A stretch of 64,000 nt of DNA, from IMG/VR virus record IMGVR_UViG_3300008259_005066, positions 1-64,000 of that record. One strand, given 5' to 3'. The notes under the pieces are model-generated. The model did no database searches, had not been told where the DNA came from, and saw only the letters and a program-made list of their open reading frames with translations. The position numbers were made by a program, and so were the translations under genes. Positions within the stretch are counted from its first letter, which is position 1. The number at the start of each line of letters is the position of its first letter. Below are positions 1 to 64,000 of this stretch, piece after piece.

Positions 1-603
1 TTCTGTGACACGGATATCAGTCCTATGATACTCGTCTGCCTTTCCTGATGGATCCACGTGCCAGGCATAGAACTTAGACCATGGATAATCTTGTTTGAGG
101 CTAAGAAAAGCATTTAAATTGGGCACAGAATCATCATACATGATGATCTTGTCGTAGTGTTCTTTGCCCAAGAGATGTTGTAGTATGATCTTTTTCTTTT
201 CTTCTGTGGCGGCTTTGATGTTCAAGTTACCAGCACGATACACATGCACTTTTGACATGTCAATGCCATACTGGCGGAATGTGTCCAGGAAAACTTCTCG
301 GTCATTGAAGTCCGAGCGGGCAGTAAGCATGATCACTTTGTTGCCCGTGGCGATGTCTTGTTTGAGTTGGCGGATCATGCCGGGTATGGGCCGGGCCTGT
401 GTGTAGAATTCGCGGGCATCACGGAAAGCACCAAAGTCAAACTCTTCACCGGGCTGTAAGTGATAGTGCGTGAAATCGTGACTGTTGAGTTGCTTCACGA
501 TCCGGCCATCTCGCACCACATTGACCTTGGTGTCTGTGTTGACCAGGGTATCGTCGATGTCAAAGATGACTAGTTTGGAATTAGCGAATTCTTGTGCTCT
601 CAT
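1..603 (-). CDS. HAD-superfamily phosphatase (3'-partial, runs off the window; missing from the ORF track)
   Basis: Manual translation from ATG at 603 is open to base 1: MRAQEFANSKLVIFDIDDTLV...MLTARS...IIMYDDS, i.e. HAD motif I (DxDxT), motif II (T) and motif IV (DD). ATGA overlap with the upstream gene. Confidence 0.85.
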   Translation of the reverse strand, partial: MRAQEFANSKLVIFDIDDTLVNTDTKVNVVRDGRIVKQLNSHDFTHYHLQPGEEFDFGAFRDAREFYTQARPIPGMIRQLKQDIATGNKVIMLTARSDFNDREVFLDTFRQYGIDMSKVHVYRAGNLNIKAATEEKKKIILQHLLGKEHYDKIIMYDDSVPNLNAFLSLKQDYPWSKFYAWHVDPSGKADEYHRTDIRVTE

Positions 604-998
604 ATCATCATCTCTGGTAATGTTTCCAAGTTGGCTTTAATCTTGGCAAAGTTCATCATATATCGGTTGACAAAGTTGGCATAGCCGGCAGGATCTCGGG
701 CTTCCCAATCTGCCAATCTTTCTTTCATTGCTGTGTATTCTTCATTAAATGCCACAGCATTGTCGCTTTTACTTTTCCAAAGCCGTTTGACTGTTTCTTC
801 TAGTTCTCGGGTGTTGGGGTTGTTGGGATAGTGTTTTTTACATATCACCCACAACATGGCAGCCGAGTTGATAATCTTGGTGATGTTCCGATCGGATTGA
901 GCCTGTGCCGATCCCAATGCCGCAGAGCCAGCCACGGCACCTGCACCACGCAAGAAGTCTCTGCGAGTGATTTCGACTAATAATTCTTGTGCTCTCAT
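600..998 (-). CDS. Hypothetical protein with twin-arginine (Tat) signal peptide
   Basis: MRAQELLVE-ITRRDFLRGAGAVAGSAALGSAQA matches S/T-R-R-x-F-L, then a hydrophobic stretch and an AxA site. Confidence 0.75.
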   Translation of the reverse strand: MRAQELLVEITRRDFLRGAGAVAGSAALGSAQAQSDRNITKIINSAAMLWVICKKHYPNNPNTRELEETVKRLWKSKSDNAVAFNEEYTAMKERLADWEARDPAGYANFVNRYMMNFAKIKANLETLPEMMI

Positions 999-1579
999 AG
1001 GCTGTAGGGGTCCATTATCACTAGATGTCCATCACTGCGGCGGCGAAGGTTCTCTATCTGGCTGAGATCCAATGGTGCCTGGCCGCCCAAGGCTTGTTCT
1101 AATTTCAGCGTAGTATTTACTAAACCCACGATGTCATCACGATCCAGTTCTTTAGGAGCAGGATTGTTCTTCATGAACTCCTGCACACGATCACGTCCGC
1201 GTGCCACTGCTGACATGAGATTTTCTAGATAGTCCAGCGTGGCTTCTTCGTTGGCCACATAGTCTAGATATTCCATCTCATACACAAAATATGTTTCTCC
1301 ATCTACTTCAAAATCACCCACGTTGTAAATCCTGGGAATATAAGGATCGTTCTGATTGTTGACGAAAAATTTCACGTAGTTTTTTACTATCTGTTCGCGC
1401 TCATCTTCACCTATGCCCAAGACTTTGAGTATGGTGTTTCTGGGACTCAACAAGGCTATCTGATCGCGTCCTTCGCCGGCCAACTGATAGCCGCGATCAA
1501 AAAAATAGTTTTGTATGCGGTCGCTCACTGATAACTCATCGGGAAAGTTTACTTCTGAGATAAATTCCTGAGATCGCAT
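995..1579 (-). CDS. Protein-kinase-like (PKL/APH fold) protein
   Basis: Gly loop GEGRDQIA, ILKV lysine, YEMEYL hinge, DLSQIEN catalytic-loop-like and VIMDP metal-binding-like motifs. The D-to-N spacing is one residue longer than canonical. Confidence 0.6.
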   Translation of the reverse strand: MRSQEFISEVNFPDELSVSDRIQNYFFDRGYQLAGEGRDQIALLSPRNTILKVLGIGEDEREQIVKNYVKFFVNNQNDPYIPRIYNVGDFEVDGETYFVYEMEYLDYVANEEATLDYLENLMSAVARGRDRVQEFMKNNPAPKELDRDDIVGLVNTTLKLEQALGGQAPLDLSQIENLRRRSDGHLVIMDPYSL

Positions 1580-4500
1580 TATCTCAACTCTGGAACGACT
1601 TCTACAGGATCATCAAATCTAGTGCGTTGGACCCATTGTTGTGCCACACGATTGGCATCGCCTTGACTGTTGCCTATGCCACTGAATGTGTAAACCACTT
1701 CTCCGGTATTGGCATTACGAACTTGCCACTGTCCTGAGAATTCGCCCTGTGTTGATGTGGCAACAGGTTCTCGATTGCGCCGCCAGGCTGGTGGCTGTTG
1801 GGGGTGTGCAGATATCTGTATGACATCTCGACCTTGCATTTGCAACGCATCTAGCACATTCTGTCTGGCTGCTTCGGCACTGGCAGCATCAATGTTCAAA
1901 GAATCACTGGTTACTGTTCCATTCCTGCGCTCATCCCACATCACACGATAGTGTCCGGCGTCTGATACTGCGCCTGCGGGTTGAGGCTCACCTATGCGGG
2001 CCTGTATCTGTTCACGATCTCGCTCATTGTCTGCGGCCACTGCCGGTGTGACCTTGGGTTCTTTGAGGCGTTTGGCCACTTGAGCACGTGGACTCAGTTT
2101 CTTTTCTGGCTCAGGAGTGTCATCGGGCCTGCGATATATCTCCCAATCGTCGGAGAGTCGATCCCCATACTCTGCCTGGACCTTTTGTTTGGCGCTGTCA
2201 AAATCTCTGGCTCTCACAGTGAGTATGATGTCACCGTAGGAATCCTTGACATCATACCAGGGTTGTTTCTTACGGATGTCCAAATTGCGCCATTCGGGTG
2301 TGTTGCCATACTTGTCCTGGGCTTTCATATAGGCAGTGTCATATTCATCAGCATAGAAAGAGTCGATCACTCCATCCGGACCAGACTTGCGCTGATCATA
2401 CACTTCCCACTCTTCTTGACCAGTGGTGGGTATCTCTTTCTGGAGCACAGCATTGGCCCACTGTTTCTTGAGTTCTTCTGGAGTTATGGTGCCAGCGGCA
2501 AATTGAGAAAATAACTTGAGACCGTCATCCTGTGCACCAGGTGAGATCAGTTTATAGAGTTTCTTGGCATACTCTCGACGTTCCAGGCTGGGGCTGCCTG
2601 CGATCTGCATGGCCCGAGCAAAACGCAACATGGTATTGCGGATGTCATCATATTCACCGCGACTCTCCATGCTCAAATAATCACCACCAGGGCTACGGAA
2701 CTCGATGTAGCCGTCCTGGATGTGTGCGGAAGTATACTTGCTGTCTCCCACACCGTTCTGCACATAACGAGCAGCCAGTTCAATGAGATTTTTCTGCACC
2801 AGTTCTAGCGCACCCATGGGATCAAATCGGGCTTCAGTCAAGGTGCCACGGCGGCGTGCCACTCGCATGCTGTTGCGTAGTTTTTCCATGGCCGATGCCG
2901 CATAGGTGTTGGAAGCACGACCAAACTTGTCTAACACATATTCGTCGCCCATGAACAGCACCAATTTGACATAGTCTACGTCACCGCCCACATAGGGTAT
3001 AGAGATGCCCATGTGCAAGCCGGTGGACGAGTTGGTGTAGGCATCGGCTTCTGAGTTACCCCACTCAATGACCTGTTTTAATTTTTCCAGGGTTTCTGGC
3101 AAGGGCAAGGGCGGAGACACGATCTCCAGGCCCATTTCATCATCACGATCATCGGGATCTAGGCTGCCGTCGGGTTCGATGATCCATAGACCGGGCCGGC
3201 GTGTGGTTGAGTGATAGCCTGAACTCACTCTCACTGGCATGTCAATGGCACGCTGTAAACTGTCACCAATATCGCTCCACTCACGGCTGCCAGTGCCAGA
3301 GGAACCGCCGCTCCAGTAGGGCCAGTCAAGGCTTTCTTCGTTGGCGATGTCAGTCATGTAACCATAGCGGTCACGGAGGAAGTCGCGCTCGTCAAACTCG
3401 CCGCCTTCTCGCGTCATGTCCCAATAATATTCGCGAGCCGCATCGTAATATTCGCCTTGGCTTTCAAACTCATTGGTTATTTCTTCTTCGAATGCTTCGT
3501 AGGCCGCATCGGATGCTTGCTTGAATTTTTGGTATAATTCGTTGGATTGTGCATATTCATCTTGATCTGAACTCCGGGTGAATCTTGGTGCGCTGTCGCC
3601 GGCTTTCATTATAGCGGGCACTGCCTCGTCACCAAACATTTCCTCGACCTTGTCTTGGATACGGCTTTCGCGTTCTGAGTCATCGTCCCAGACGTTGGTC
3701 TCCATGTAGTCACGCACTTGATCTTCGGCATTCTCGTCCCAACTCTCGCTGATCTGTTCATCCACCCATTCCGTATAGGCTTCCCACAGGCTTTCTCGTA
3801 GATTCCTGGCGCCTTGGCGACTCAAACCATAGCCATAGTCATCATTGGAGAAGAAGTCTATGACATGGTCGATGTCATCGGGCCGCTCATCGTAGTCGTA
3901 GTCAGGTTCTTGATCGTAGTCTTCATCTTCGTCACGGCGGGTATCACGGAAGATCATTTCTGCTTCAAAGCCAGCACGTATACCTTCGGCTTCAGGTGAT
4001 CGTGCCCAGGCTTCCAAGGCCCCGGGCGACATCTTGACTTCCATGAGATCTTCGTCTTCTTTGACTTCGATATTGACGAATCTTGGATTGCCAGTGCTCG
4101 ATGGTGTTTTTTTCTTTGGTCGGTCTTGTGGTCTTTGTCGTTTCTGGGCCTGCCCTTGATATGGATCTATTTTTTGTCGTGGGTCTGGCACGGCAGGAGT
4201 CACGGGATTGACTGCTTCAAACACTCCAGTCTCTTTGTATTCCTTCAAGGCATTGGCCAAGTTCTTGATCAACAGTGCAGGACGTCCTTGGCTGTCGGTC
4301 TGCAATCCCAACTTGTTGGCTTCCTTGCCTACCTGTCCAGGTCGGATGTCCACTGTGAGTGCTGTTTTGAAACGTGGATCTCGGGCCTGCTTCTTGGTGG
4401 GGATGTATCCTGCGGCATCTTCGGCCACTTTACCTTGTATTTTCTGTTGTAGACGATAGGTCTTGATGAATTCTTGTTCCGAGCGTGTCAAAGGACGACC

Positions 4501-6678
4501 TGTCGTGGCCTTGCCCATGACAAACTTGTAGTAATCTTCGCGATCCTTTTGGCTGCGACTCACAGGCGTCTGTATGGATTCTCTGCGCGGTGCAGGACCT
4601 TCTATGGCCACCATGGCACGGAATGTGTTGCCCATCTGGTCGGCTTCATAATCCACAACTTTCCAACCGCCGGGGCCCAGTGTGATAGGACCATGCTGTT
4701 GTTGTGCGCGGTTGATGGCATTTTCCAGGGCCTGTCGATAGGCTTCTTCTGCTGATGCAGCCGCGGCGTTTGACGCAACACGCTCACCTTGCGGTCTAGG
4801 GCCACCATAGATCAACTTGCCACCCACACGTATTTCTCTGCTGCCACGTGCCATGTCTCGGGCTATGCCCTTGAGTTCTTCTTCAGCACCTGCACGGGTG
4901 AATATGCCCGAGGGTTGATATATCTGCTTGCCTATCTGATAGGCCGTGCGCCCCACATCCTGTGCCTGTGCTGGCTGTCCCAGTGCGGCAGCGGCTGCCA
5001 AGGCACCAGTGGCCAGTGTTTTTCCTAGACCCTCGTCTACATTGTAGGTAGGATCGGTCTTGACTTTTCGCATGCCAGCGGGTTGCCGGGGATCCTTGGG
5101 ATCGATGTCAGTGACATCTAGGCCCGTGGCTTCAAGATCTTTGATAAACTTATGTTCAGTTTCTTCATCGCCAAACGAGATTATGGAACTGGGCGGACCT
5201 GCACCAAAGTCATGCTTGCCCAAGCCTTTCATGTTGGAGATATGCTGTCCCAGTTTATACCAGTCATACACATCGCTCACATCTACCCTCACAGTGCCTG
5301 CGGGCATGGTAGGAGGGAATTCTGGTCCTGGTGGAGTCTGATCACCATAGTGTGCTTCGATGTCATCGTCTTCACCGGTAGCACCAGACTGTGCGGGTGA
5401 AAACTCCGTGAGTTGTTCTTCCACTGTTTCTGCGCCAAAGAATTCTGGATAACGATTTTGGAAATGGCGCATAATTATGCCGGCCTTGGCATTGGCTTCA
5501 TTTTCGTAGGGACTGCCAGTGCGACCCGCTGTGTCAGGCATGTCTCGGCCCAAGCGTTCATGCTGTTTGTAATGTGTGAGTTCATGTGCCACGGTGCGCA
5601 GGATGTCCATGATGTGGCGACCGTGCGTGGCCACCTCGATCATTTTCTTGTCATCTACATAATGGCCCATTGAATGGATGTGCTTGGTAAATTTTTCACC
5701 TTGCAAGATGATGCGAGGCAGTTGATCTAGTTTGAGATAGTGCGCGGCAAAATGCACGAAGCGTCGCACCACTTTGTCTATGGGTATGCTCTTGGCTTGG
5801 ACTTTGATCTCTGTGTCTTCGCGCACACTTTCTCCGCCCCCATCACCACCACCGTCTGCGGCTTCGGCGTCGCCGGTCTGACCATAATAACCATAGCCTG
5901 GATAATAGTATCCACCAAAAGAACCGTAACGGAATTTCTTTTTGGATTTTTTCTTTTTCTTTCGGCGCTCAGCCAGGCTCAGTTTTGAATCTTCTAGGCT
6001 GGCACGATGATCAAACAATCGCTTGACCAAGCCCTGTGTGCGCAGGATCTTGTAGGCCAGATTCTCAGGTCCGAACTCGCCATGTTCATCCAATCCGGCC
6101 TGCCGATATCGTTTTATCACGTCAGTGAGATTGGTGACTGTTTGGAGATCATCGCTGGTCAGTGCAAGCTCAATCAGGTCTCTGAGTTTTTCGTATTTTG
6201 CTTGGGTTGATTTTTCGTCGAGATTGCCTTGGCGTCGCACGGGAATACGAGTCCAGTCGTCACGCACGATGGAATACTCACCAAGGCTGCGAACAGGCTT
6301 GCCTGCGTCTTGCACATAGAGCTCGACGTCATAGCCTCTGATTTTTATATCGTGTTGATCGTTGTATTGATATTTCTTTGCGTTGAACAGCTCTTGATAT
6401 ACTTGGTCGGGATTGAGCTTGCTGAAATCTACTAAGAGATGCAGATCTATGTCGGAATGGGGAGTATAGGTGTATGCGGCATTGGATCCACTCACAGTGA
6501 TATCTTCCACTGCGAGATCACTGATGCCCAGGAATTCGCGGAAATCATCGGCGATTTTGATCAGGGCCTCACGCACTTCGGGACGCATGCGATCGCCGTC
6601 CCAGAGTGCAGGGTTTAATTCAGTGTGAAACTTTACCGCGTCCGACAGGCGGTAACTGTCTAATTCATTGATGTCCAT
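1579..6678 (-). CDS. 1699-aa multidomain protein: nucleotidyltransferase + zincin (HExxH) + putative amidoligase + C-terminal repeats
   Basis: GS-x10-DIDLH (pol-beta NTase) in residues 60-125; AHELTH at 364-369; GFEAE...W-x-I-x-PDGSL...EIVSPPL...NSSTGLHM...IEFR (COOH-NH2 ligase family). Confidence 0.8.
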   Translation of the reverse strand: MDINELDSYRLSDAVKFHTELNPALWDGDRMRPEVREALIKIADDFREFLGISDLAVEDITVSGSNAAYTYTPHSDIDLHLLVDFSKLNPDQVYQELFNAKKYQYNDQHDIKIRGYDVELYVQDAGKPVRSLGEYSIVRDDWTRIPVRRQGNLDEKSTQAKYEKLRDLIELALTSDDLQTVTNLTDVIKRYRQAGLDEHGEFGPENLAYKILRTQGLVKRLFDHRASLEDSKLSLAERRKKKKKSKKKFRYGSFGGYYYPGYGYYGQTGDAEAADGGGDGGGESVREDTEIKVQAKSIPIDKVVRRFVHFAAHYLKLDQLPRIILQGEKFTKHIHSMGHYVDDKKMIEVATHGRHIMDILRTVAHELTHYKQHERLGRDMPDTAGRTGSPYENEANAKAGIIMRHFQNRYPEFFGAETVEEQLTEFSPAQSGATGEDDDIEAHYGDQTPPGPEFPPTMPAGTVRVDVSDVYDWYKLGQHISNMKGLGKHDFGAGPPSSIISFGDEETEHKFIKDLEATGLDVTDIDPKDPRQPAGMRKVKTDPTYNVDEGLGKTLATGALAAAAALGQPAQAQDVGRTAYQIGKQIYQPSGIFTRAGAEEELKGIARDMARGSREIRVGGKLIYGGPRPQGERVASNAAAASAEEAYRQALENAINRAQQQHGPITLGPGGWKVVDYEADQMGNTFRAMVAIEGPAPRRESIQTPVSRSQKDREDYYKFVMGKATTGRPLTRSEQEFIKTYRLQQKIQGKVAEDAAGYIPTKKQARDPRFKTALTVDIRPGQVGKEANKLGLQTDSQGRPALLIKNLANALKEYKETGVFEAVNPVTPAVPDPRQKIDPYQGQAQKRQRPQDRPKKKTPSSTGNPRFVNIEVKEDEDLMEVKMSPGALEAWARSPEAEGIRAGFEAEMIFRDTRRDEDEDYDQEPDYDYDERPDDIDHVIDFFSNDDYGYGLSRQGARNLRESLWEAYTEWVDEQISESWDENAEDQVRDYMETNVWDDDSERESRIQDKVEEMFGDEAVPAIMKAGDSAPRFTRSSDQDEYAQSNELYQKFKQASDAAYEAFEEEITNEFESQGEYYDAAREYYWDMTREGGEFDERDFLRDRYGYMTDIANEESLDWPYWSGGSSGTGSREWSDIGDSLQRAIDMPVRVSSGYHSTTRRPGLWIIEPDGSLDPDDRDDEMGLEIVSPPLPLPETLEKLKQVIEWGNSEADAYTNSSTGLHMGISIPYVGGDVDYVKLVLFMGDEYVLDKFGRASNTYAASAMEKLRNSMRVARRRGTLTEARFDPMGALELVQKNLIELAARYVQNGVGDSKYTSAHIQDGYIEFRSPGGDYLSMESRGEYDDIRNTMLRFARAMQIAGSPSLERREYAKKLYKLISPGAQDDGLKLFSQFAAGTITPEELKKQWANAVLQKEIPTTGQEEWEVYDQRKSGPDGVIDSFYADEYDTAYMKAQDKYGNTPEWRNLDIRKKQPWYDVKDSYGDIILTVRARDFDSAKQKVQAEYGDRLSDDWEIYRRPDDTPEPEKKLSPRAQVAKRLKEPKVTPAVAADNERDREQIQARIGEPQPAGAVSDAGHYRVMWDERRNGTVTSDSLNIDAASAEAARQNVLDALQMQGRDVIQISAHPQQPPAWRRNREPVATSTQGEFSGQWQVRNANTGEVVYTFSGIGNSQGDANRVAQQWVQRTRFDDPVEVVPELR

Positions 6679-9211: not shown

Positions 9212-9219
9212 TATTTATA
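9212..9219 (-). promoter_or_regulatory. T4-type late promoter
   Basis: TATAAATA, 5 nt upstream of the ATG at 9206. Confidence 0.65.
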
Positions 9220-10199: not shown

Positions 10200-10895
10200 T
10201 TATTTATCGCGTATGAGTTTGACTGTTTTCCTTGTGATACGAGGTAACAACAGGCTCAGCATAGTAACTATGCCCATGCCATCATGATCAATGAAAAAGT
10301 TTTCACTGACATAATAGTGTTTTTGATCCTGTTCAATAAACTGCGCCAGACCCGGTCCCAATCGTATGCTTTCTTGCTTGATCAAGAAGTCCACTAGATT
10401 GTGGCGTTGAGGTTCATCCAGACGCTGTGCCCGGAAATAGGACCGGAACTCGTGCTGGCTGTTCTGGATCCTCAGCGTGTCTCTGGGGCGATCCAACACA
10501 CTGCGTTTCACGCTCACTGCATGCACATAAGGCAACTGTTCTATGGTGCGGATCAGGCCCAGATCGCTGGTGTAAACATATCCCCAATCACCTGACACTG
10601 TGATTTTGTAATTCTGTTGTGCCTGCAGGAAATCCAACATGGCATGGCAATTGGCTCGCTGTTCTTCGGTGATCTGACCCCGGCGGCTGGCCCAAGATCC
10701 ACCAAAGTTCGGACTGCGTTGCCGCCAGTCATTGCGATGGTTGATCATGCGATCGATGCGGTCATGCTCCATCTCTCGCACACAACTCATCTCGTCCATG
10801 CGGAAAGCCAAACAATACTCATAGAGATCGAAATAAGATCTATCTCTACGATGTATTTTAATGGTCAAAGGGCTAGTCGACTTGTATGATACCAT
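10200..10895 (-). CDS. Hypothetical protein
   Basis: Start moved to MVSYKS to limit overlap with clpA; start is uncertain. Confidence 0.6.
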   Translation of the reverse strand: MVSYKSTSPLTIKIHRRDRSYFDLYEYCLAFRMDEMSCVREMEHDRIDRMINHRNDWRQRSPNFGGSWASRRGQITEEQRANCHAMLDFLQAQQNYKITVSGDWGYVYTSDLGLIRTIEQLPYVHAVSVKRSVLDRPRDTLRIQNSQHEFRSYFRAQRLDEPQRHNLVDFLIKQESIRLGPGLAQFIEQDQKHYYVSENFFIDHDGMGIVTMLSLLLPRITRKTVKLIRDK

Positions 10896-13082
10896 CGGCG
10901 TCCACGGTTCCTGTGCTGGGTATTGGGTTGAGATCGCTGAAAGCCACTGTGCCATCGCGATAGTCTGCTGTGATTTCGCAGTCCTGCAAGCGATCAAACA
11001 GGATCTTGCGGCTCAATGGCACGCGGATCAGTTCGTCGATTTTGCGACCCAACGGCCTCGCACCCATCTTGGGATCATAGCCAACGTCTGCTAGATGCTC
11101 CACCATGGCTTCTGTCAGCGTGAGTCTGATGTTGCGATCCACTAGACTGCGTTTGAGTTCGTCTACGAACTTGATGACCACTTTCTTGATACTCAGCGGA
11201 TCCAGTTTGTTGAATTTGCAGATGAGATCCAAGCGATTGCGCAGTTCCGGGCGGAAGTAATCTTTCACAGCGCGATCTTCTTCGCCGGTCTTCTCGAGGC
11301 TCTGGCCAAACCCGATTGTGTTATTTTCATTGTCTCGAGCACCTAGATTTGACGTCATGATGATGATGCAGTTCTTGACGTCCACGGTCTTGCCATTGCT
11401 TCCAGTGATGGTGCCTTCGTCCATCATCTGCAGGAAGATGTTGGCTATGTCTGGGTGGGCTTTTTCCACTTCATCGAACAACAGCACTGAGAATGGATGT
11501 TTAGAAAGATCATTGATCAGTTTGCCCCCGGCCAGTTGGCTGTCATCATAGCCCACATAGCCCGGAGGTGCTCCCAGCAGTGAACTCACGGTGTGTCGAT
11601 CTTGATATTCGCTCATGTCGTATCTCAACAGTTTCATGTCGAGATTGTCGGCCAACAGCCGTGCCAGTTCTGTTTTACCTGTGCCAGTGGGGCCCAGGAA
11701 AAGGAAACTGCCCACTGGCCTGCGACCTGATGCGATACCAGCGAAGTTCACATAGATACGTTCCAACACTTGATCCACCACATGATCCTGACCGTAAAGT
11801 TTTTGCTTGATGTTGCTGTCTAGTTCGGTCACTCGGGTGTTTACATCATTCTTCACACGTTCGGGTGGAATATTGGCCACACGGCCCACTTGATCCTGGA
11901 TCAAATCTGCGGTGATCACCACATCATCAAGATCTTTGATGCGTTCTCGGGCACAGGCCGCATCTACTAGATCTATGCTCTTGTCAGGATTTTTGCGATC
12001 AGTGATATAACGACTGGCCAGTTCCACTGCTTTGGTGATGGCATCTGCGTTGATTTTGACCCGATGGAATTCTTCCATGCGAGGTTGCAATCCTGTCAGT
12101 ATGCGTATAATGCGCGATCTTTTTCAAACGACTCATAGTATTCTTCCCAAGTGGTTGATGCTATGACTTTGAGCAAGCCCTTGGTTATGGCCGGCTTGAT
12201 CATGTTGGCAAAGTCTAGACTGGATCCAGACCCTGCACCAGCACCGCGCATGGTGTGCGCTTCATCTATGAACAGTATGACATTTTTCTTATGTTCCAAG
12301 GCCATGAGCACGGCCTTGAGTTTTTCTTCGAACTCGCCGCGATATTTGCTTCCTGCCAGCAATGAGCCAATCTCCAGGCTCCAGACTTCATGATCCTTTA
12401 GGAATTCTGGCACTGTGCCGTTGTATATCAGCGTGGCCAGGCCCTCGGCGATGGCAGTCTTGCCCACTCCGGGATCTCCTACCATGAGCACGTTTGACTT
12501 AAACTTTTTGGCCAATACCGTGATGATTTCATTGAGTTCTGTGGATCGCCCGATCAAGGGCTCCAGTTTATCCTCTCTCGCCCGCTGGCTGAAATTGATA
12601 CAGTGTTCGGTGAGGATTTCGTTGGCCTGATCATCACTGATCACTCCGTCCTTGGTAGTGTAGTTGGCTTGCCAAAATTCGATGAACTCTTTCTTTTCCA
12701 GCCCGTGCTTGAGGAAATAATAGTGTGCATGGCTGTTTGACTCGTTCATGATGGCCAACCATAGATCTATAGTGGTCACTTGCCTGCGGCCTGTGAACAA
12801 CACCTGGGTGAGCGCACGATTGAACACACGTTCCAATCCATTGGTTTTCTTGGGATCTTCGTCGCGATTCATACGCAGGCTGACCATGCTGTCGATATAA
12901 CTTTCAAGGTCTTGATCGAGATGATCCACAGGCGTGCCAAACTTGACGATGACCTGCGTGAAAGGCTGATGCCTTACCAAGGCCAAGGCCAGGTGTTCCA
13001 GCGTGACATATTCGTGTCGCTTTACGCGGGCCAGTTTTTGCGCCTGGGCTAATATTTGTTCAATTTCAGGATTCTGTTGCAT
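10873..13082 (-). pseudogene. clpA: ClpA-like AAA+ chaperone split by a frameshifting deletion near 12105
   Basis: Clp N-domain, D1 Walker A GDPGVGKT and Walker B LFIDEAH, D2 GPTGTGKT, LLFDEVEKAH and GARPL. KDRAL joins IRILTGL in another frame; the RRF-containing segment is absent. Confidence 0.9.
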
Positions 13083-13512
13083 TCTGTTCCTTGGCTCGAT
13101 CATGCATGGTTATTCCTTGTAGATGATCCAACTCGTGTTGGAAACATCTGGCTTCAAGTCCCGAAAGATCTGCTTCGACCCAATCACCGAAATGATTTTG
13201 GTATCTCGCCCTGATCGCATCGGGTCTTTTAAGTATACATGAGTCTCCGGGAAAACTCAAGCATCCTTCCTCAAATTCGGCAAACACATCACTGCTAGAC
13301 ACTATGACAGGATTAAAGCACGCCCGATCGTGTCCGTCAACGCTCATCACAAACAATCGTTTGGAAAGGCCAATCTGTGGAGCTGCCAATCCTATGCCAT
13401 TTTGCAAGCGCATCAACCCAAACATCTGGGTGGCCAGATCATGATTGCGGACAGGATACTGGAAATCTACAGGCTTGGCTTGATTGTGTAAAACCCTGCG
13501 TGTCAACTTCAT
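13066..13512 (-). CDS. def: Peptide deformylase
   Basis: GIGLAAPQIG, EGCLS and QHELDHL motifs; ATG follows TAAATA. Confidence 0.95.
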   Translation of the reverse strand: MKLTRRVLHNQAKPVDFQYPVRNHDLATQMFGLMRLQNGIGLAAPQIGLSKRLFVMSVDGHDRACFNPVIVSSSDVFAEFEEGCLSFPGDSCILKRPDAIRARYQNHFGDWVEADLSGLEARCFQHELDHLQGITMHDRAKEQNATES

Positions 13513-16169: not shown

Positions 16170-17279
16170 TTATTTTGTGGGCTCAAATAGCCAAGTATGG
16201 TCTTGTTTTCTCAAGACGTCTAGTTCTAGGTTCACACGTTGGGCAGTGGTCCATGCATCGGAGTCAAATTCATGCTGGATGATGTTGTTGCGCAGATCTA
16301 CCAGGACATCACGTGCAGAATCTACAAAATCCAGAGCCAACAAACAATCAAGATAGTCAATGGCCGCAGGACGCATATGATCTGGCCAGTTAATGGGAGA
16401 GAAGTATCTAGGATGGTTGCATATCTGTATGAACTGTGTGCGTCCGTTGGGACGATCGTTGAATTTCCGGACGATGTTGATAAATGCCAGCAAGGGTCCA
16501 AGTTGGAAAAAATTTAGTTGCGTTATCACTGTGCTGAAGTTCACACTGTGACCATGGTTGGCTAGATACAGGACGTTGCGCTCGATCTGCGACCAACTGG
16601 TGCCGTGGCGTATGATTTCTGCAGCTGGGCCCACAGCATCAAGACTCACAGTGAAATTAACATTGGGCATGGTGCTGGCGATTTCCAACCACCATGGATC
16701 ACGGAAGCTGCCATTGGTGATCATGATGATCTTGGTATCTAACTGCTCACGTCGTATACGATTGACTATTTCTTTTACTTCGGGCAATAAGGTAGGTTCA
16801 CCGCCGGTGAACATCAGTCTATCAATGGTCGATATGTTGTCCAAGATCCATTGTTTGTCTGACACTGTGGCGGTTTTTTCTGGCGGAATCTGATAGAGAG
16901 TTTGTAAGAATTCGCTCTGGCGCACATCTTGTGCGATACCGTTGGAAAAATAAGGTTCGCATGACCGGCATCGAAAGTTGCAGACGTTGCTGGAACGATA
17001 ATCCACATAATCTATATCAGTGTCTGACACAGGAGTGGAACCATAGTGTTGCAACGCTCCCAGTCTGGTGCCCACACCATGCTGTTGTTCGTTACGGATA
17101 CAGTCAGCACATCCAGAGTCTATGGATCCTGACAGGATGTTTTGTTGCAAATTCCTCAATCGATCACTGGACAACCACTGAGTCACAGTGATCGGAGCAG
17201 TCTCTGTGAAACTGCAACAAGGCTTGATACCTCGTGGCTCAATGAAAACATGTCGGAATGGCAAAGGACAATAACTCAT
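16170..17279 (-). CDS. Radical SAM protein with N-terminal SPASM/twitch-like Cys cluster
   Basis: CNFRCRSC (CxxxCxxC), FTGGEPT; N-terminal CP...PCC...C..C. Confidence 0.9.
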   Translation of the reverse strand: MSYCPLPFRHVFIEPRGIKPCCSFTETAPITVTQWLSSDRLRNLQQNILSGSIDSGCADCIRNEQQHGVGTRLGALQHYGSTPVSDTDIDYVDYRSSNVCNFRCRSCEPYFSNGIAQDVRQSEFLQTLYQIPPEKTATVSDKQWILDNISTIDRLMFTGGEPTLLPEVKEIVNRIRREQLDTKIIMITNGSFRDPWWLEIASTMPNVNFTVSLDAVGPAAEIIRHGTSWSQIERNVLYLANHGHSVNFSTVITQLNFFQLGPLLAFINIVRKFNDRPNGRTQFIQICNHPRYFSPINWPDHMRPAAIDYLDCLLALDFVDSARDVLVDLRNNIIQHEFDSDAWTTAQRVNLELDVLRKQDHTWLFEPTK

Positions 17280-17893
17280 AGTGCAGACACTCTGTGTAAC
17301 CAATGATCAGCGGCTGCCACATGCGCTGCCTCCAGTGGATGCCAACCTGGGCTCTCGGCAAAGCCACGACCTCGGCTCCATTCGAGGAATGTCTGTCCAT
17401 CAAAATCCTGGAGATGTTGGTGTATTTTGCTTTGTAAAACCTGCACATAATCCGGAGCATGCCATTGTTGATCCAACAGCAATCGATCCATGTAAGTCAT
17501 CACACATCGATGACCTTGCATCATGTCGCACGCATGTGATACATAGATCAAATTCCGGAACTTGTCTGACAGTTCACCGTGGAAATGTCTATAGTAAAGA
17601 TCGTCATTTGGTGAATCATCCAATGCGGGCCGTATGGTATGCCACTGGGCGTCTTGGCTGTGGACATAATCAAAACGATCAATCCAGGTCCAGTTGACGA
17701 GATAGGTGGCCCGGGGCCCAAAACGATCCAGCGCCTCAATCACTTGTTGTAGTATGCGGAGATTGCCCACGCCAGGTTGGGCTAGACAATGATACTCTGA
17801 GTCCAGTCTCTGCGCGACCAGCGCGGGCCATGTGCTGTTTGCATCTTGTAGATCGCTACCGTAGAAAAAACTGTCGCCACAACTCACTATCAT
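17276..17893 (-). CDS. SGNH/GDSL-like hydrolase
   Basis: CGDSF block I, PGVGN and a C-terminal HP; paralog of 34680..35375. Confidence 0.65.
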   Translation of the reverse strand: MIVSCGDSFFYGSDLQDANSTWPALVAQRLDSEYHCLAQPGVGNLRILQQVIEALDRFGPRATYLVNWTWIDRFDYVHSQDAQWHTIRPALDDSPNDDLYYRHFHGELSDKFRNLIYVSHACDMMQGHRCVMTYMDRLLLDQQWHAPDYVQVLQSKIHQHLQDFDGQTFLEWSRGRGFAESPGWHPLEAAHVAAADHWLHRVSAL

Positions 17894-37503: not shown

Positions 37504-37532
37504 ATTATAATACCTTTTGGATTATTGGTCAA
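37504..37532 (-). promoter_or_regulatory. Sigma70-type promoter
   Basis: TTGACC-17-TATAAT. Confidence 0.75.
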
Positions 37533-38928
37533 CCTGCTGAAAAATAGGCTCTAACCAAGGAAAAACTCGTTGCCAATTGGTTGCTCTACGCCGATCGAGT
37601 TCGGTTAAAAATTCTCGGAGCTTTATGATTTCCTCTGTGTCAAATCCTTTGCTGGCGCTTTCTTGAGCAATGCCTTGCAGATATTTTTTGATATTGATCT
37701 GCTCCGCATCATTCTCGGGCATGATCTGGATAGCTCTATTAAAATCATCCACGAAAACATCGCCTAAAATATCAACATGCATGTGCAACGGTGATTCTGC
37801 ACTGTTCATGTAATGAGATACATGGCGTATCTTTCTCCATTGATTGATGCGCTCAATAAGATCAGGCAGAGTCTTGATAGTGAGAGGAGTCAGTGTGCTA
37901 CCTACTATTAATCTAATCCAAGATTGATCAAGCAGGTATCGGAAATTTTTTTCCCAAATGTCTAGTTTGAGAGGAAAACGTGCATATTCTTGTTCAGGTC
38001 CCCAGCAATCGAGACTGGCAGTTACCACAAAAGTTTTGAGATGTTGTTTGTCAATGAGATTTTTAATTTTGCTTACCACCGCAGACACTCGAGCCGGAGT
38101 AGCATTGAGATTGGTAAAAATCTGGAACTCTAGTTCCGGCATTGGGTTGTGATCAAAAAAATCCAGACAATCATCGAGATCTTTTTGGAACAAAGGCTCG
38201 CCGCCAAGGAAATTAAAGTTGGTAAGGCTATGTCCGTGTTGCGATATCCACTCAAACATCTTGGTTTTATTTTTTGCGATATCAGGACTTTTCTTAAATG
38301 TATTCGAGATGATCAAACCATTTTTTTCAAACTTACCATGTTTTTTGTTTTCAGCATCCCATAAACTGCTGAAATGCGGACCGCAATACACACATTTCAA
38401 ATTACAGACATTGTCAAAGTAAACTTCTAATATACGAGGAGTGACTTGGATAGCAACAAGATCATCATCCAGTTCTGGCGGAGCAAACATTCCAGGCATA
38501 TCAAGATTGGTTATCCTGTCACTTTGTCCTCCGGCCGTTTCTATATCTCGACAATAACCACAACCTTTTTCGGGCCAAAATCCCTGGAGCATGCGAGATC
38601 TATCGTCCAACTTGCTAGGAGTGTTGTGAAAATCAAATACATCGATATCAAACTTGTGATGATTGGTGCGATGACAACTGGCAGTATTTTCTGTCGTAAG
38701 ATAAACTGTGCTCCAGTTCCATTTGAGTTGACAAGCTGTGGCAGTTTTTATGGGAAATGTTTTGTGTTGATATCGAGGCTGATTTCTGTAACTACCTATC
38801 ACATAACCATGAACTTGTTGACACTCATCCTGTATCCACTGTGGTAGAGATAAAAAATCTTGTTCATGGTCGCAGTCCGGCCATGATGAATCTTTTATGC
38901 TTAGATAAAATTCCTGCCAAGGCGTCAT
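37522..38928 (-). CDS. Radical SAM protein
   Basis: CNLKCVYC and FLGGEP; AT-rich. Confidence 0.9.
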   Translation of the reverse strand: MTPWQEFYLSIKDSSWPDCDHEQDFLSLPQWIQDECQQVHGYVIGSYRNQPRYQHKTFPIKTATACQLKWNWSTVYLTTENTASCHRTNHHKFDIDVFDFHNTPSKLDDRSRMLQGFWPEKGCGYCRDIETAGGQSDRITNLDMPGMFAPPELDDDLVAIQVTPRILEVYFDNVCNLKCVYCGPHFSSLWDAENKKHGKFEKNGLIISNTFKKSPDIAKNKTKMFEWISQHGHSLTNFNFLGGEPLFQKDLDDCLDFFDHNPMPELEFQIFTNLNATPARVSAVVSKIKNLIDKQHLKTFVVTASLDCWGPEQEYARFPLKLDIWEKNFRYLLDQSWIRLIVGSTLTPLTIKTLPDLIERINQWRKIRHVSHYMNSAESPLHMHVDILGDVFVDDFNRAIQIMPENDAEQINIKKYLQGIAQESASKGFDTEEIIKLREFLTELDRRRATNWQRVFPWLEPIFQQVDQ

Positions 38929-39692
38929 TCTTGATCTTTGAATTTACACACCGGAATAGCCTGCATCTTGTGTAGATTGCGAGCACGGATCTCTCGATAT
39001 CGTTTTAGATTTTTCTTGAGCTCTTTGTTATCGCACTGTATTTCGCCCTGGTCCATGCGCATGGCCACTTCAAGGTCGGCGTAGGTCATGCCTAACTGTT
39101 GTTCGTCAGTGCGACCATCTGCCCATAAACCATCAGTGGGAGCGGCATCAATGATATCTTGCAACACGCCCAGTTCACGACCCATGGCCCACACTTCAGT
39201 TTTCATGCAGTCTCCAATGGGACTGATATCCACACCACCGTCGCCATACTTGGTAAAGAACCCCACTCCAAAGTCTTCAACCTTGTTGCCTGTGCCCACA
39301 ACGATGCCGGAGTTGGCTTGCGCTAATTGATACAAGGTCATCATGCGTAATCTAGCACGACTGTTGGCATAGGCCAGTTCATCGCTGAACACACGGGTAG
39401 CATGTTCAAATTGTTCAAAGGCGGATGTGAGATCGATAACAAAGTGATCCACCAGTTCAAACGTGTCTTTCAGCCACTGTCCATGCCGCATGCTGAGATC
39501 ATGTGTGTGTTCGCTTTGCCGGATGGGCATGCTCACAGCAATGACATACAGTCCTGCACGAGCACACAGCGTGGATACCACGGCCGAATCTATGCCGCCC
39601 GATACACCCACCACCAAGGTATTGATTTTGTGTCTGGTGGCATAACTTTTAATCCACTTTGTAATGTAGTTGATACGTTGTTTTGGTGTCAT
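38925..39692 (-). CDS. nadE: NH3-dependent NAD+ synthetase
   Basis: SGGIDS, NSRARLRM, GTGNKVE, GFFTKYGDG and APTDGLW. Confidence 0.95.
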   Translation of the reverse strand: MTPKQRINYITKWIKSYATRHKINTLVVGVSGGIDSAVVSTLCARAGLYVIAVSMPIRQSEHTHDLSMRHGQWLKDTFELVDHFVIDLTSAFEQFEHATRVFSDELAYANSRARLRMMTLYQLAQANSGIVVGTGNKVEDFGVGFFTKYGDGGVDISPIGDCMKTEVWAMGRELGVLQDIIDAAPTDGLWADGRTDEQQLGMTYADLEVAMRMDQGEIQCDNKELKKNLKRYREIRARNLHKMQAIPVCKFKDQE

Positions 39693-47046: not shown

Positions 47047-47064
47047 GGTCAGTGGGCACTAACC
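47047..47064. promoter_or_regulatory. 18-bp palindromic box, copy 3
   Basis: GGTCAGTGGGCACTAACC. Confidence 0.7.
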
Positions 47065-47784
47065 TAGGGTCTGCCCAAAATGTTGGTATGCGTGTGGGTT
47101 GAGTTCGAATCCAACGAATCTACGTCCCAACCGGAGAGCGGCACGGCCCGTGGAGAACGATCCTCCAAAGGGATCCAGCACCAAGTCTCCTAGATTGGAA
47201 CTGTAATCGATGAACTTTTCAATGAACGATTCGGCCAACTGATTGTTGTTGCGGATCTCGCCCGTCTTGTATTCTCTAGGCAAGGTCTGCACACTGAGTC
47301 GGTCGTTGTATGATTCTGTGGTATCAGCAAAACGACAATGTGTGTTGAAGATCCTCTTCTGTTGGCCTCGTTCTCGCTTGGACCAGAACAGCACATGGTA
47401 ATGGCTCGAGACCCATTTCTTTTTGGTGTATACTCCAAAGGTGTATTGGGCGATGATATGATTGATTTCTTCGAGTTGTGTGTAGTGCAAGGCGTTGAGA
47501 ATATGATGTAGATTTGAATAGCCAGACACGATATACAAGGATCCACCGGGCCGCAACACTCGCTCACATTCCTGGATCCAGGCATGACACCATTGGGCAT
47601 ATTGATCTCTGGGCACATCCACATAACCGGCGATGACCTTGCTGTCGTCTCGATTGTAGTGCGTGTCTAGTTGATCACCGGCTATGCCATAGGGCGGATC
47701 AGTGAATATGAGATCTACTGTGCCATCGGCCACGTGTTCCTGCATGCCCACTACACAGTCCTGCTGGTAGATGCTATGTGTCAC
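47059..47784 (-). CDS. N6-adenine/N4-cytosine DNA methyltransferase (beta class)
   Basis: FTDPPY catalytic motif N-terminal; VLDPFGGS SAM-binding motif C-terminal. Confidence 0.9.
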   Translation of the reverse strand: MTHSIYQQDCVVGMQEHVADGTVDLIFTDPPYGIAGDQLDTHYNRDDSKVIAGYVDVPRDQYAQWCHAWIQECERVLRPGGSLYIVSGYSNLHHILNALHYTQLEEINHIIAQYTFGVYTKKKWVSSHYHVLFWSKRERGQQKRIFNTHCRFADTTESYNDRLSVQTLPREYKTGEIRNNNQLAESFIEKFIDYSSNLGDLVLDPFGGSFSTGRAALRLGRRFVGFELNPHAYQHFGQTLG

Positions 47785-59309: not shown

Positions 59310-59339
59310 ATTATAACCGAAATCACTATTTCTGGTCAA
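59310..59339 (-). promoter_or_regulatory. Sigma70-type promoter
   Basis: TTGACC-18-TATAAT. Confidence 0.7.
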
Positions 59340-60130
59340 CCAGCGGTTTCTGCGGCTATGCGATCCAGGGCAAAGTCCCTGTAGTTTGCATCAATTTCAA
59401 AGCCCATCCATGACAGACCACAGCGATGGGCCGCGATGGCAGTAGTGCCTGATCCCATGAATGGGTCCAGCACAGTGCCTGATGTGATGCCTGACACACG
59501 GATGCAATTTTCGGCCAAGGCCACAGGAAAAGTGGCCGGATGATCGCCTCGATGCTTGGCCCGGTTGCTGATGGTCTCATAGGGTATGAACCAGGTGTTG
59601 CCACGACAGCGTAGATTGGGTTTGGTTCCGGCAGTCTTGGGATTGCGTAGATTCTCCGCATAGTATTCGTAGGGCACACCAATGGTGAGTTTGTCCAATG
59701 GGCTCCGACCTGCCTTGGTGAAATGGAACACATGCTCCCATGTGGGAGCGATGTAACGTTCGGAGTTCACTGGTTTGAAGTGTCCCGATGTCTTTCCGTT
59801 GACATAGATCGATTTGACCCACATCACGGAATTCTGGAGCACGAAATGATCACGAGCCACCTGCGCCACGTCTTGTGCCACCCAGGGATCTTGATTGCTG
59901 TAACCTACGTTGAGCCAGAAGTGTCCGTCATCGGTCAGCACTCTTTTGATCTCGCCGAACACCGACCCCAGCCATCGGAGATAGTCCTGCCGTGGCCGGT
60001 CGTCGCGATAGGTGCTGTAACCAATGCCCAGGTTGTAGGGCGGAGAAGTCACGCAGATATCGACACTGGCTTCGGGCAAGGCCTGCATGCCTGTGACGCA
60101 GTCCTGCAATATGATGTTATTTTTATCCAA
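59336..60130 (-). CDS. N4-cytosine/N6-adenine DNA methyltransferase (beta class)
   Basis: VTSPPY, HPATFP and VLDPFMGSGTT. Confidence 0.92.
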   Translation of the reverse strand: MDKNNIILQDCVTGMQALPEASVDICVTSPPYNLGIGYSTYRDDRPRQDYLRWLGSVFGEIKRVLTDDGHFWLNVGYSNQDPWVAQDVAQVARDHFVLQNSVMWVKSIYVNGKTSGHFKPVNSERYIAPTWEHVFHFTKAGRSPLDKLTIGVPYEYYAENLRNPKTAGTKPNLRCRGNTWFIPYETISNRAKHRGDHPATFPVALAENCIRVSGITSGTVLDPFMGSGTTAIAAHRCGLSWMGFEIDANYRDFALDRIAAETAG

Positions 60131-61724: not shown

Positions 61725-62191
61725 TAATCGTAGATCCAACCCAGATCCTCGATCCGGTGTATCCAAGTAAACACTGGGATGTCGAAATCCAGTGTCCAGA
61801 TTCCATTCCATCCCAGGTAAGTGTGAGCAGATAGATATTCTGGTAGATCCTGTCCAGACTTCCGTTGTTCAGTGGCCCAGGGTTCTGGGTATCGAGGACG
61901 ATAACGTCCTTGCCATAGTAATTTGTCAGTGCTGATATCGTTTAATCTCACACCCTTTATTACCACGGCTTTGTCTTTGTTCCCCACTGTGTCTGAATCT
62001 TGTTTGTTGAGCAATTCAACTGAAACTTTGGCATCACCTTTGCCGGATTCCCATGTATGGGAAAAATGGGTGGCTTTTTCGAGAGGGCCGGCCCAGCGCC
62101 ATTCTGGGCCTATCTTCACGATTATCTCAGGCAGTTCCTCATGCCACACAGAATCGATTTCGATATCGATCTTAGTTCTGTAGGTAGCCAT
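61724..62191 (-). CDS. Hypothetical protein accompanying a radical SAM gene
   Basis: Start MATYRT overlaps the radical SAM end. Confidence 0.65.
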   Translation of the reverse strand: MATYRTKIDIEIDSVWHEELPEIIVKIGPEWRWAGPLEKATHFSHTWESGKGDAKVSVELLNKQDSDTVGNKDKAVVIKGVRLNDISTDKLLWQGRYRPRYPEPWATEQRKSGQDLPEYLSAHTYLGWNGIWTLDFDIPVFTWIHRIEDLGWIYD

Positions 62192-63494: not shown

Positions 63495-64000
63495 CTCGTT
63501 GGGTGATGATGCGATCAGCTAGGCCATACTCCACGGCCTGTTGTGCTGTCATCCAGTTGTCTCGATCCATATCTTTCTCCAGAGTCGCATAGTCTTTGCC
63601 GGTGTGCTGGACATAGAGTTCAGTCAAGGTCTTCTTCCAGCGCATGAGTTCTTTGTAACGGATCTCCACTTCAGTGACCTGTCCTTCAGCTCCACCCAGA
63701 GGTTGATGGATCATGTGCTGGCTGTGTGGCAGGATGAACCGCTTGCCAGCAGTGCCGGCGCAGGCCAGCATGGAGCCCATCGACGCGGCCAATCCACACA
63801 CTATGGTAGAAACATCACACTTGATGAACTGCATGGTATCATAGATGCTCATGCCCGCTGTGATTGACCCGCCTGGTGAGTTGATATAGAACAAGATGTC
63901 TCTGTCAGGATTTTCCGCTTCTAGGAACAGCATCTGCGCCACTATGAGGCTGGCTGAATGTGAGTTTACGTCTGTATCCAGCATGATGATGCGATCTCTC
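63487..64000 (-). CDS. clpP: ATP-dependent Clp protease proteolytic subunit (5'-partial)
   Basis: YINSPGG, AASMG (Ser), MIHQP (His) and DRD (Asp). Confidence 0.95.
   Translation of the reverse strand, partial: RDRIIMLDTDVNSHSASLIVAQMLFLEAENPDRDILFYINSPGGSITAGMSIYDTMQFIKCDVSTIVCGLAASMGSMLACAGTAGKRFILPHSQHMIHQPLGGAEGQVTEVEIRYKELMRWKKTLTELYVQHTGKDYATLEKDMDRDNWMTAQQAVEYGLADRIITQRDV

Follow-up and report, generated by a model that had tools for sequence, protein, structure and literature searches.

The question raised by this locus is whether a single large phage protein acts as one enzyme or is a precursor that is cut into several. The analyzed DNA (hereafter the window, i.e. the whole stretch of 64,000 nucleotides, positions 1 to 64,000 of IMG/VR record IMGVR_UViG_3300008259_005066) derives from an uncultured freshwater jumbo phage with a genome of ~316 kb, and the protein is encoded by an open reading frame (ORF) located at window 1579-6678 (-), with 1699 codons plus the stop and without internal stops. 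An initial annotation of this DNA had proposed that the prohead protease cuts the protein at hydrophobic-x-Glu motifs, so that one late gene delivers several effectors. The identical 1699-aa product was called on 24 contigs from several lake metagenomes, and the ORF is therefore not an assembly oddity. At least 1,267 significant homologs of 1,000-2,660 aa were retrieved (word-indexed search, 8,000 candidates scored), many of the long ones on metagenomic contigs of 310-370 kb, while no full-length polyprotein was found in cultured phages. The best explanation, which we consider moderately probable, is that the gene encodes a polyprotein of a T4-related jumbo phage that is packaged, cut by the head protease of the Peptidase S77 type, and delivered as separate products to the next host.

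All the modules listed in the initial annotation were present: a pol-beta-type nucleotidyltransferase (NTase, N), a basic peptide (b), a HExxH zincin (Z), a signal-peptide-bearing module (S), an amidoligase (A) and beta-beta-alpha repeats. Together with small cassettes here named V and I, their order in the window copy is N-b-Z-V-S-I-A. The idea of a cleaved polyprotein was supported by comparison of homologs (conservation of junctions, domain edges and shuffling of modules); S77 as the enzyme, the late timing and the packaging are parts of it that we infer.

The evidence that carries this reading comes from the junctions between modules. Over the whole protein, the motif [LIVM]-x-E was not enriched (30 occurrences vs. 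25.6 ± 4.3 in shuffled sequences), and the argument thus rests on the position and conservation of the motif, not on its abundance. In homologs with less than 70% identity, the Glu and the hydrophobic residue at P3 were both kept at E5 (88/92), E237 (91/92), E287 (86/91) and E880 (91 of ~92). When contexts were read upstream from the invariant VKMSP that starts the amidoligase, this start was directly preceded by [LIVMF]-x-E in 95 of 97 distinct contexts, and a second [LIVMF]-x-E, followed by Ser or Asp, was found 6-7 residues upstream in 90/97 (background rates of 1.8% and 0.25% per position in the same proteins, respectively). At least 15 unrelated cassette C-termini were found upstream of the amidoligase, all of them ending in hydrophobic-x-Glu (QQKLAE, TYNVNE, DPDLFE, ATGLME, EQNLTE, NCVKIDE, AEGMNE and RSRVVNE, among others). 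A Glu also preceded the I cassette in each of 79 distinct contexts; in 66 of these, P3 was V, L or I.

The conserved sites were located at the edges of folded units. In AlphaFold models, built on alignments of 117-118 sequences, linkers with low predicted local distance difference test scores (pLDDT) spanned residues 246-288, 417-454, 533-577, 749-782 and 818-875, with E287, E549, E753 and E874/E880 flanking them; linkers thus coincided with [LIV]xE, and the main sites were neither unconserved nor buried within folds. E237 corresponded, within 1-2 residues, to the C-terminus of stand-alone NTase homologs. Among the boundary motifs named in the initial annotation, SLAE, SVRE, NVDE and DLME stood strongly, whereas QLTE (425) and KVAE (753) were kept only in close relatives and held through equivalent sites that other subclades carry at the same kind of boundary. 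ALKE (813) and GVFE (821) were poorly conserved and were dropped as conserved junctions. TLTE (1282), which the annotation had placed inside the amidoligase as a caveat, does lie there, in a poorly conserved loop, and was kept in only 15 of the 17 homologs aligning at that position.

In the comparison of homologs suggested by the annotation, modules were seen to be permuted, gained and lost at the junction sites, and nearly all cassettes ended in [L/I/V]-x-Glu. The core order NTase, zincin, amidoligase was constant, and it was the small cassettes that moved: the commonest relatives showed the arrangement N-Z-I-V-(S)-A and some showed N-V-Z, the V module being located before Z, after Z or after I depending on the homolog. 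Unrelated inserts of 60-860 aa were found between N and Z, Z and I, S and A, and after A. In one homolog (P0118), a GNAT domain passing the Pfam cutoff was bounded exactly by KLAE/ and AVAE/ (a slash marks the junction), and the next cassette spanned VLNE/ to GMNE/. Among the other inserts, DUF6886 and DUF6934 were matched weakly, with scores under the cutoffs, and two homologs have a sigma-70 region 4 domain according to the precomputed Pfam column of the database. Distant IMG/VR relatives kept the NTase and its LS[LI]xE junction, followed by different sets of modules. Such mobility of the cassettes would be expected of junctions that separate independently working units.

A further line of evidence is given by signal peptides. 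In 69 of 120 homologs, the residue that follows a junction Glu was the first of a Sec- or lipoprotein-like signal peptide, as judged from sequence patterns (basic start, hydrophobic run, AxA or lipobox-like end), most of the lipobox-like motifs being non-canonical. The distinct signal stretches included 24 of the AxA/Q type, that of the window copy among them, and 31 with a lipobox-like ...A-G-T/A-P-G-C end; a typical signal junction reads DLEE/GWKEK-AAGLAAAACIAGTPGC, and V, L, I or M occupied P3 in 52 of 60 signal-bearing junctions. Since a signal peptide works from the N-terminus of a protein, its placement at a junction is difficult to account for if the bond stays intact. On this basis, export of the S cassette to the envelope is hypothesized.

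Homologs of two of the modules occur as stand-alone proteins in cultured phages, and these are associated with virions. Amidoligase homologs (~30% identity) were found in Atu_ph07 (gp196, starting MRWQDISSKKLTE/LKM) and in RsoM2USA (RsoM2USA_26, starting MKLIQKLSE/LKM), and the ends of both leaders align with DLME/VKM of the polyprotein; both proteins have a shorter or different insert and lack the dodecin-like tail. The gp196 protein was reported in the proteome of purified Atu_ph07 virions (14 unique peptides, 30% coverage), and its gene is two genes from that of the portal, the S77 protease (gp21 homolog) of this phage being gp204. In RsoM2USA, the S77-like ORF379 has conserved ELNHP and GVSSRG motifs. 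The NTase is similar to S-CREM2 ORF156 (35% identity, E = 3e-44), which starts MKKLISE/L and is listed in the virion proteome of this cyanophage with 6 peptides. The leaders of gp196 and ORF156 are 7-13 residues long and end in L/I-x-E. Besides, stand-alone NTase genes were located 5-9 kb from portal and S77 genes in three IMG/VR contigs. No homolog of the zincin was found by tblastn in those cultured phages. The conserved junctions, the stand-alone virion homologs with their leaders and the absence of tblastn matches to the zincin there together favor a precursor that is packaged in the head and cut by the head protease. The NTase gp195 of Atu_ph07, which adjoins gp196, was discarded as a homolog of the N module, as no similarity was detectable (E = 0.47). 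The stand-alone NTase homolog of T4-like cluster C cyanophages adjoins a cytidylyltransferase that is also a virion protein (S-CREM2 ORF154-156, L369 76-2193; S-CRM01 g125-g127, L368). A 506-aa gene located two genes upstream of the polyprotein gene in the window has a weakly cytidylyltransferase-like N-terminus, and its match to the S-CREM2 virion cytidylyltransferase was not significant (E = 0.14).

The junction motif agrees with the specificity of S77 head proteases, for which cleavage after Glu in a three-residue motif is characteristic. The T4 enzyme gp21 (S77) cuts L/I-X-E, and 7-65-residue N-terminal peptides are removed in this way from T4 head proteins, the injected enzyme Alt included (PMC9026906); the protease of phiKZ cuts S/A-X-E and that of SPN3US cuts A-X-E (PMC5694885). 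According to the mechanism proposed here, the polyprotein would be taken into the prohead, where a T4 gp21-type protease would cut after the Glu of the [L/I/V]-x-E junctions, in this copy at E5, E237, E287, E421/425, E549, E753, E874 and E880. The predicted products would be a leader (residues 1-5), the NTase (6-237, 26.8 kDa), a peptide of 5.5 kDa and pI 9.7 (238-287), the zincin (288-421/425, 16 kDa), V (426-549, 13.5 kDa), S with its signal peptide (550-753, 22 kDa), I (754-821, 7.4 kDa, with an uncertain C-terminal end), linker peptides (822-874 and 875-880), and the amidoligase with its insert and repeats (881-1699, 93.6 kDa). The larger products would be retained in the head until their ejection together with the DNA, and would then act on the new host in the manner of T4 Alt and the internal proteins. 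The identity of the protease, the packaging, the timing of expression, the ejection and the biochemical targets are what we infer from these comparisons.

With cleavage at E549, the S cassette would begin with the signal peptide, and the product could be sent to the cell envelope. A bolder version of this step, which is speculative and rather unlikely, is that cleavage within the head unmasks the Sec or lipoprotein signal, the phage injecting a ready secretory precursor that the export machinery of the host installs in the envelope within moments. There it might block superinfection or alter the envelope before phage gene expression. More broadly, the junction motif would then be a plug-in socket, through which small genes recombined into the array would gain delivery by the capsid without a targeting signal of their own.

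Several observations weigh against the preferred reading. About 15% of the junctions carry Q, T or R at P3, and the motif that precedes VKM could in part be a piece of the amidoligase fold. To our knowledge, there is no precedent for a capsid-enclosed protein with a signal peptide that needs export after ejection and after translation. The gene is located after a ClpA-like ATPase in a conserved block, without adjoining head genes, and a search of the 64-kb window, ~85 kb downstream and 10 kb upstream detected no gene for an S77 protease, a portal or a major capsid protein. This search consisted of a PHROG scan of ~50 window ORFs and of tblastn runs in which S77, portal and capsid proteins from T4, RsoM2USA and metagenomes were compared with the window and with every polyprotein locus, and covered in total ~150 kb of the ~316-kb genome; the DNA searched downstream and upstream yielded instead ferritin, DNA polymerase B, sugar-nucleotide, GTP-cyclohydrolase, Tct/DctP transporter and two ClpP genes. 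As S77 was not found in these ~150 kb, its presence in the genome rests on lineage. Moreover, no contig with both an S77 gene and the polyprotein was shared among the IMG/VR matches listed in three S77 scans, and a candidate link of this kind, P0150, was rejected since it lies in an unrelated head module. The late expression assumed in the initial annotation was unsupported, as no RNA run was listed with the polyprotein gene. The T4 late promoter sequence TATAAATA occurred twice in the 64 kb vs. 0.9 copies expected, which does not favor late expression; this count is not above chance and hence is uninformative. The sole minus-strand copy in the window, at 9212-9219 (-), is located 5 nt 5' of the start codon of the 506-aa gene, too near to it to resemble a typical T4 late promoter. 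Finally, the polyprotein itself holds an intact, invariant zincin, a possible processing enzyme that the initial annotation had not weighed in this role.

The last point leads to a somewhat unlikely but live rival, namely a self-processing polyvalent protein in which the embedded zincin cuts the junctions, be it in the producing cell, within the capsid or once injected. The zincin domain was present in nearly all homologs, with H365, E366, H369 and E392 invariant in 117 sequences, and matched the Pfam family MPTase-PolyVal PF18818 weakly (12.9 bits, E = 0.12, below the gathering cutoff of 27.5); in the passages of the polyvalent-protein paper considered here, it is argued that MPTase releases the other domains (PMC5512222). 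An intact and universal zincin thus keeps the self-processing proposed by Iyer and Aravind in play. It would also dispense with the S77 gene that was not found near the polyprotein or in ~150 kb of the genome, and after self-cleavage in the cytoplasm, the producing cell could export the signal-peptide cassette in the ordinary way. Zincins, however, usually select on P1', while the junctions show a fixed Glu at P1, a hydrophobic P3 and a variable P1' (R, D, S, G, V, L or A), as expected for S77. L/I-x-E leaders also persist in phages with S77 where tblastn finds no such zincin, and the zincin has junctions on both sides, as the other cassettes do. For these reasons, it was ranked below S77 as the processing enzyme.

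Processing without packaging would imply a cytoplasmic cut by the zincin, a ClpP-type protease or a host protease, with the products acting in the producer cell and S exported there. Such a scenario agrees with the lack of head-gene neighbors, with the ClpA-like ATPase preceding the gene and with the two ClpP genes just beyond the window, and the signal peptides and lipobox-like motifs would suit export from a living producer more easily than export after ejection. Yet two of the modules have stand-alone homologs reported as virion proteins, the stand-alone NTase genes of the three IMG/VR contigs lie close to portal and S77 genes, and ClpP degrades processively without cutting at defined junctions; we regard this scenario as quite improbable. 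Even less is to be expected from the very improbable case of an uncleaved, possibly membrane-anchored, large multidomain enzyme whose domains cooperate (e.g. nucleotidylation and amide ligation), the motif being a feature of the linkers. The N-Z-...-A core is fused in more than 1,000 homologs, and the N4 virion RNA polymerase is packaged unprocessed despite its MPTase domain, according to the same passages (PMC5512222). Nevertheless, free permutation, gain and loss of cassettes is unexpected for a cooperating assembly line, a bare linker has no reason to bear tandem sites with a 6-7-residue spacer, and the Glu and the hydrophobic P3 are kept beside more than 15 unrelated cassettes. Signal peptides of the N-terminal type, with a lipobox-like Cys or AxA, start exactly at P1', and a periplasmic amidoligase would be left without ATP.

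Among known systems, the packaged and head-protease-cut polyprotein proposed here is closest in function to the T4 internal proteins with gp21 and to the multiply cleaved phiKZ-like ejection proteins, and closest in architecture to polyvalent proteins. T4 Alt and IPI-III are likewise carried in the head, injected with the DNA and freed of leaders of 7-20 residues after L/I-X-E (PMC9026906), the same motif as here; but each T4 internal protein has its own gene, whereas up to 10 units per ORF, tandem sites and swappable cassettes are found in this family. The enzymes also differ (NTase, zincin and amidoligase instead of an ADP-ribosyltransferase), and cleavage and packaging are in this case predicted from sequence. 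In phiKZ, 201phi2-1 and SPN3US, with their ejection and inner-body proteins, S77 cleaves many head proteins after the Glu of a three-residue motif, frequently at multiple positions in one protein, and some phiKZ-like ejection proteins have a predicted transmembrane helix (PMC5694885). There, however, the cuts mainly remove propeptides and do not part independent enzymes, the motif is S/A/G-X-E, and the lineage is group 1 as opposed to the group 2.2-like lineage here. Proteins gp196, RsoM2USA_26 and S-CREM2 ORF156 share homologous modules and L/I-x-E leaders with the polyprotein, but are products of single-module genes. The likeness to RNA-virus polyproteins (one ORF, many products and a short conserved cleavage motif per junction) is an analogy only, given that this is a double-stranded DNA phage, that the protease gene probably lies in another part of the genome and that the products would be accessory, not replicative.

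Regarding polyvalent proteins (Iyer et al. 2017, PMC5512222), the passages considered describe unrelated domains, among them the pol-beta NTase and MPTase found here and the GNAT found in relatives, in variable architectures, and predict that such proteins are delivered at invasion and cut into units. The family studied here agrees with their descriptive definition (a large phage protein with unrelated enzymatic domains and variable architectures), although the Pfam threshold of the signature peptidase was not reached. It differs from them in that Amidoligase_2 is present (the word amidoligase is absent from the text of PMC5512222), and in that its junctions are S77-like, whereas in those passages MPTase is the proposed processor. 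Junction-placed signal peptides do not appear in the passages considered, a statement limited to these passages, as the paper was not searched for the term. In the limited literature searched, neither this family nor a cassette polyprotein with head-protease sites at its junctions was found described, which is not proof of novelty.

If the proposed reading is true, uncultured freshwater jumbo phages that form a large and common group (over 500 IMG/VR loci and over 1,200 protein clusters) would pack a changeable enzyme kit as one precursor, comprising nucleotidyltransferase, metallopeptidase, amidoligase, GNAT and envelope-directed proteins, with the three-residue motif of the head protease as a universal joint. 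It would unite the internal proteins of the T4 style with the polyvalent proteins of Aravind, so far treated apart, would allow mature virion cargo to be predicted from sequence by a simple rule and would point to testable effectors of early infection. The combination of junction and signal peptide would, in turn, represent a new route for protein delivery to the host envelope.

The individual modules of the polyprotein, all encoded on the minus strand, were characterized by homology, conserved residues and predicted structure. The first five residues, MDINE (window 6664..6678), are a candidate N-terminal propeptide ending in I-x-E, with I3 kept in 92/92 distant homologs and pLDDT below 50. 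The pol-beta-type NTase follows (residues 6-237, ending SLAE; 5968..6663), and was assigned by its PHROG match (PHROG 36119, E = 3e-42), conserved residues and fold. Its Pfam match to PF01909 NTP_transf_2 reached 17.3 bits, below the gathering cutoff of 21, while homolog P0118 reached 21.9; the catalytic residues G64, S65, D76 and D78 (G-S motif and DxD) were at least 90% conserved, and Foldseek matched the fold to ANT(9) (6xz0, E = 5.5e-4), CdnE (6wt9, E = 6.9e-4) and AadA. The 50-aa peptide (residues 238-287, ending SVRE; 5818..5967), conserved in more than 90% of the homologs and predicted to be disordered, is composed of a Lys run, an aromatic/Gly block YG-FGGYxYPG (YG-FGGYWYPG in this copy) and an acidic Gly block, GGGDGGGES. 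The minimal zincin (residues 288-421, followed by VEE/QLTE up to residue 425; 5404..5817) was recognized by its invariant residues and fold. Its HELTH motif corresponds to residues 365-369 (window 5572-5586); in the AlphaFold model, strands at 322-326, 338-341 and 346-350 and helices at 300-315, 356-379 and 390-409 provide the features of the superfamily (a three-stranded sheet, an N-terminal helix, HExxH within a helix and a downstream Glu in the following one), and Foldseek matched jannalysin (4jix_B, probability 0.97) and CapP (7t5t), in addition to a weak Pfam M78 match with E = 0.2.

The region between the zincin and the amidoligase holds the mobile cassettes. A linker and the small alpha/beta V cassette (VDVSDVYDWY...TDPTYNVDE) occupy residues 426-549 (5032..5403), residues 455-532 being the folded part, and the position of this cassette varies among homologs. 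The Sec-type signal-peptide-like stretch GLGKTLATGALAAAAALGQPAQA (residues 550-572; 4963..5031) starts at P1' of NVDE and continues into QD after an AxA site (GLGKTLATGALAAAAALGQPAQA/QD). The rest of the S cassette and a helical hairpin ending in KVAE (residues 573-753; 4420..4962) were delimited from the model and the homologs, with a beta-rich core at 632-694 and the hairpin cassette at 710-753; a protein-atlas search with S returned just unnamed viral clusters with scores below a meaningful level. The I cassette (GYIPTKKQARDPRF..., residues 754-821; 4216..4419) is highly conserved, with an uncertain C-terminal boundary. It is nearly universal in the family (GYIPTKKQxxDPRF...ALTVDIxPG), yet its pLDDT was 30-50, and in minimal relatives of 288-330 aa (L189, L178 and L188) it is joined straight to the NTase. 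It may fold upon binding to a partner, as a candidate capsid-targeting or partner-binding element. Residues 822-880 (4039..4215) form a disordered Pro/Gln/Lys-rich linker that ends in EVKE, followed by a 6-residue acidic spacer ending in DLME.

The amidoligase of the Amidoligase_2 family, with its insert, spans residues 881-1415 (2434..4038), and was supported by Pfam (PF12224, residues 1137-1226, 29.6 bits vs. a gathering cutoff of 22, E = 7.9e-7; the cutoff was also passed in homologs P0035, P0109, P0042 and P0118), conserved residues and the model. Between strand 1 (GFEAE, 903-907) and the core (~1134-1415) lies a helical insert (954-1114, pLDDT above 90); the long acidic insert of the initial annotation is thus real, but it is a folded helical domain of ~160 residues and not a spacer. 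Residues G903, F904, E905, A906, E907, E1168, D1170, E1185, H1222 and R1328 were invariant in 118 sequences, and align also with gp196 of Atu_ph07 and RsoM2USA_26. Foldseek with the 1159-residue model returned nothing for the amidoligase, a multi-domain model being a poor query. Four beta-beta-alpha(-beta) dodecin-like modules with a helical linker (residues 1422-1698; 1585..2415) were recognized from the model and fold matches; they probably stay attached to the amidoligase, because no conserved junction motif separates them and the sites at 1540 and 1564 are unconserved. No function for the Amidoligase_2 or the NTase family was given in the literature searched.

The window is phage DNA with nearly all genes on one strand, and its content includes endolysin, a spanin-like protein, clamp loader, PhoH, radical-SAM enzymes and DNA methylases; two of the ORFs scanned against PHROGs matched families annotated as virion structural protein. 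The nearest cultured relatives of the ClpA-like ATPase were Phosso, Atu_ph07, CBB, SCTP-2 and GAP32, which are T4-related group-2.2 jumbo phages, and the local order of DNA polymerase B, ClpA, DnaJ and clamp loader resembles that of gp276-312 in Atu_ph07. The clade of freshwater bS21 huge phages (PMC9723584) was discarded on the basis of its GC content (31-34% vs. 49% here). The conserved neighbors of the polyprotein gene gave only weak glycosyltransferase-like and cytidylyltransferase-like matches. The gene at 995-1579, whose start overlaps the polyprotein stop, showed a weak match to a T7 gp0.7-like kinase PHROG (E = 1e-4), and the second gene downstream of the polyprotein, at 600-998 (-), encodes a 132-aa protein with a twin-arginine translocation (TAT) signal (Pfam, 28.8 bits vs. 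a cutoff of 22.7).

The ClpA/ClpB-like AAA+ ATPase gene (10873-13103, -) is split in the window into ORFs of 335 and 405 aa, with the junction near 12108/12109, while on other contigs with the identical polyprotein gene it is a single ORF of 753-760 aa. The window copy lacks 52 nt (nt 975-1026 of the copy on L031), which shifts the frame, and represents a disrupted allele or, alternatively, an assembly error. The two ClpP genes (190 and 196 aa) are located just past window position 64000 (L370 7230-10008), adjoining a radical-SAM gene. Together with the ClpA-like ATPase, DnaJ and peptide deformylase genes, they make up a full protein-quality-control set in a phage. The ~85 kb downstream, on contig Ga0114880_1000010 (L031-L036, L282-L284 and L367), holds a long run of auxiliary metabolic genes, including ferritin, several sugar-nucleotide epimerases and aminotransferases, GTP cyclohydrolase I and PTPS, peroxiredoxin, and parts of the TctABC and DctP tripartite transporters. 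Within the 64 kb, three radical-SAM genes were found (16170-17303, 37522-38928 and 62172-63494 (-)), as well as an NAD synthetase gene (38925-39692) and DNA methyltransferase genes (47059-47784 and 59336-60130).

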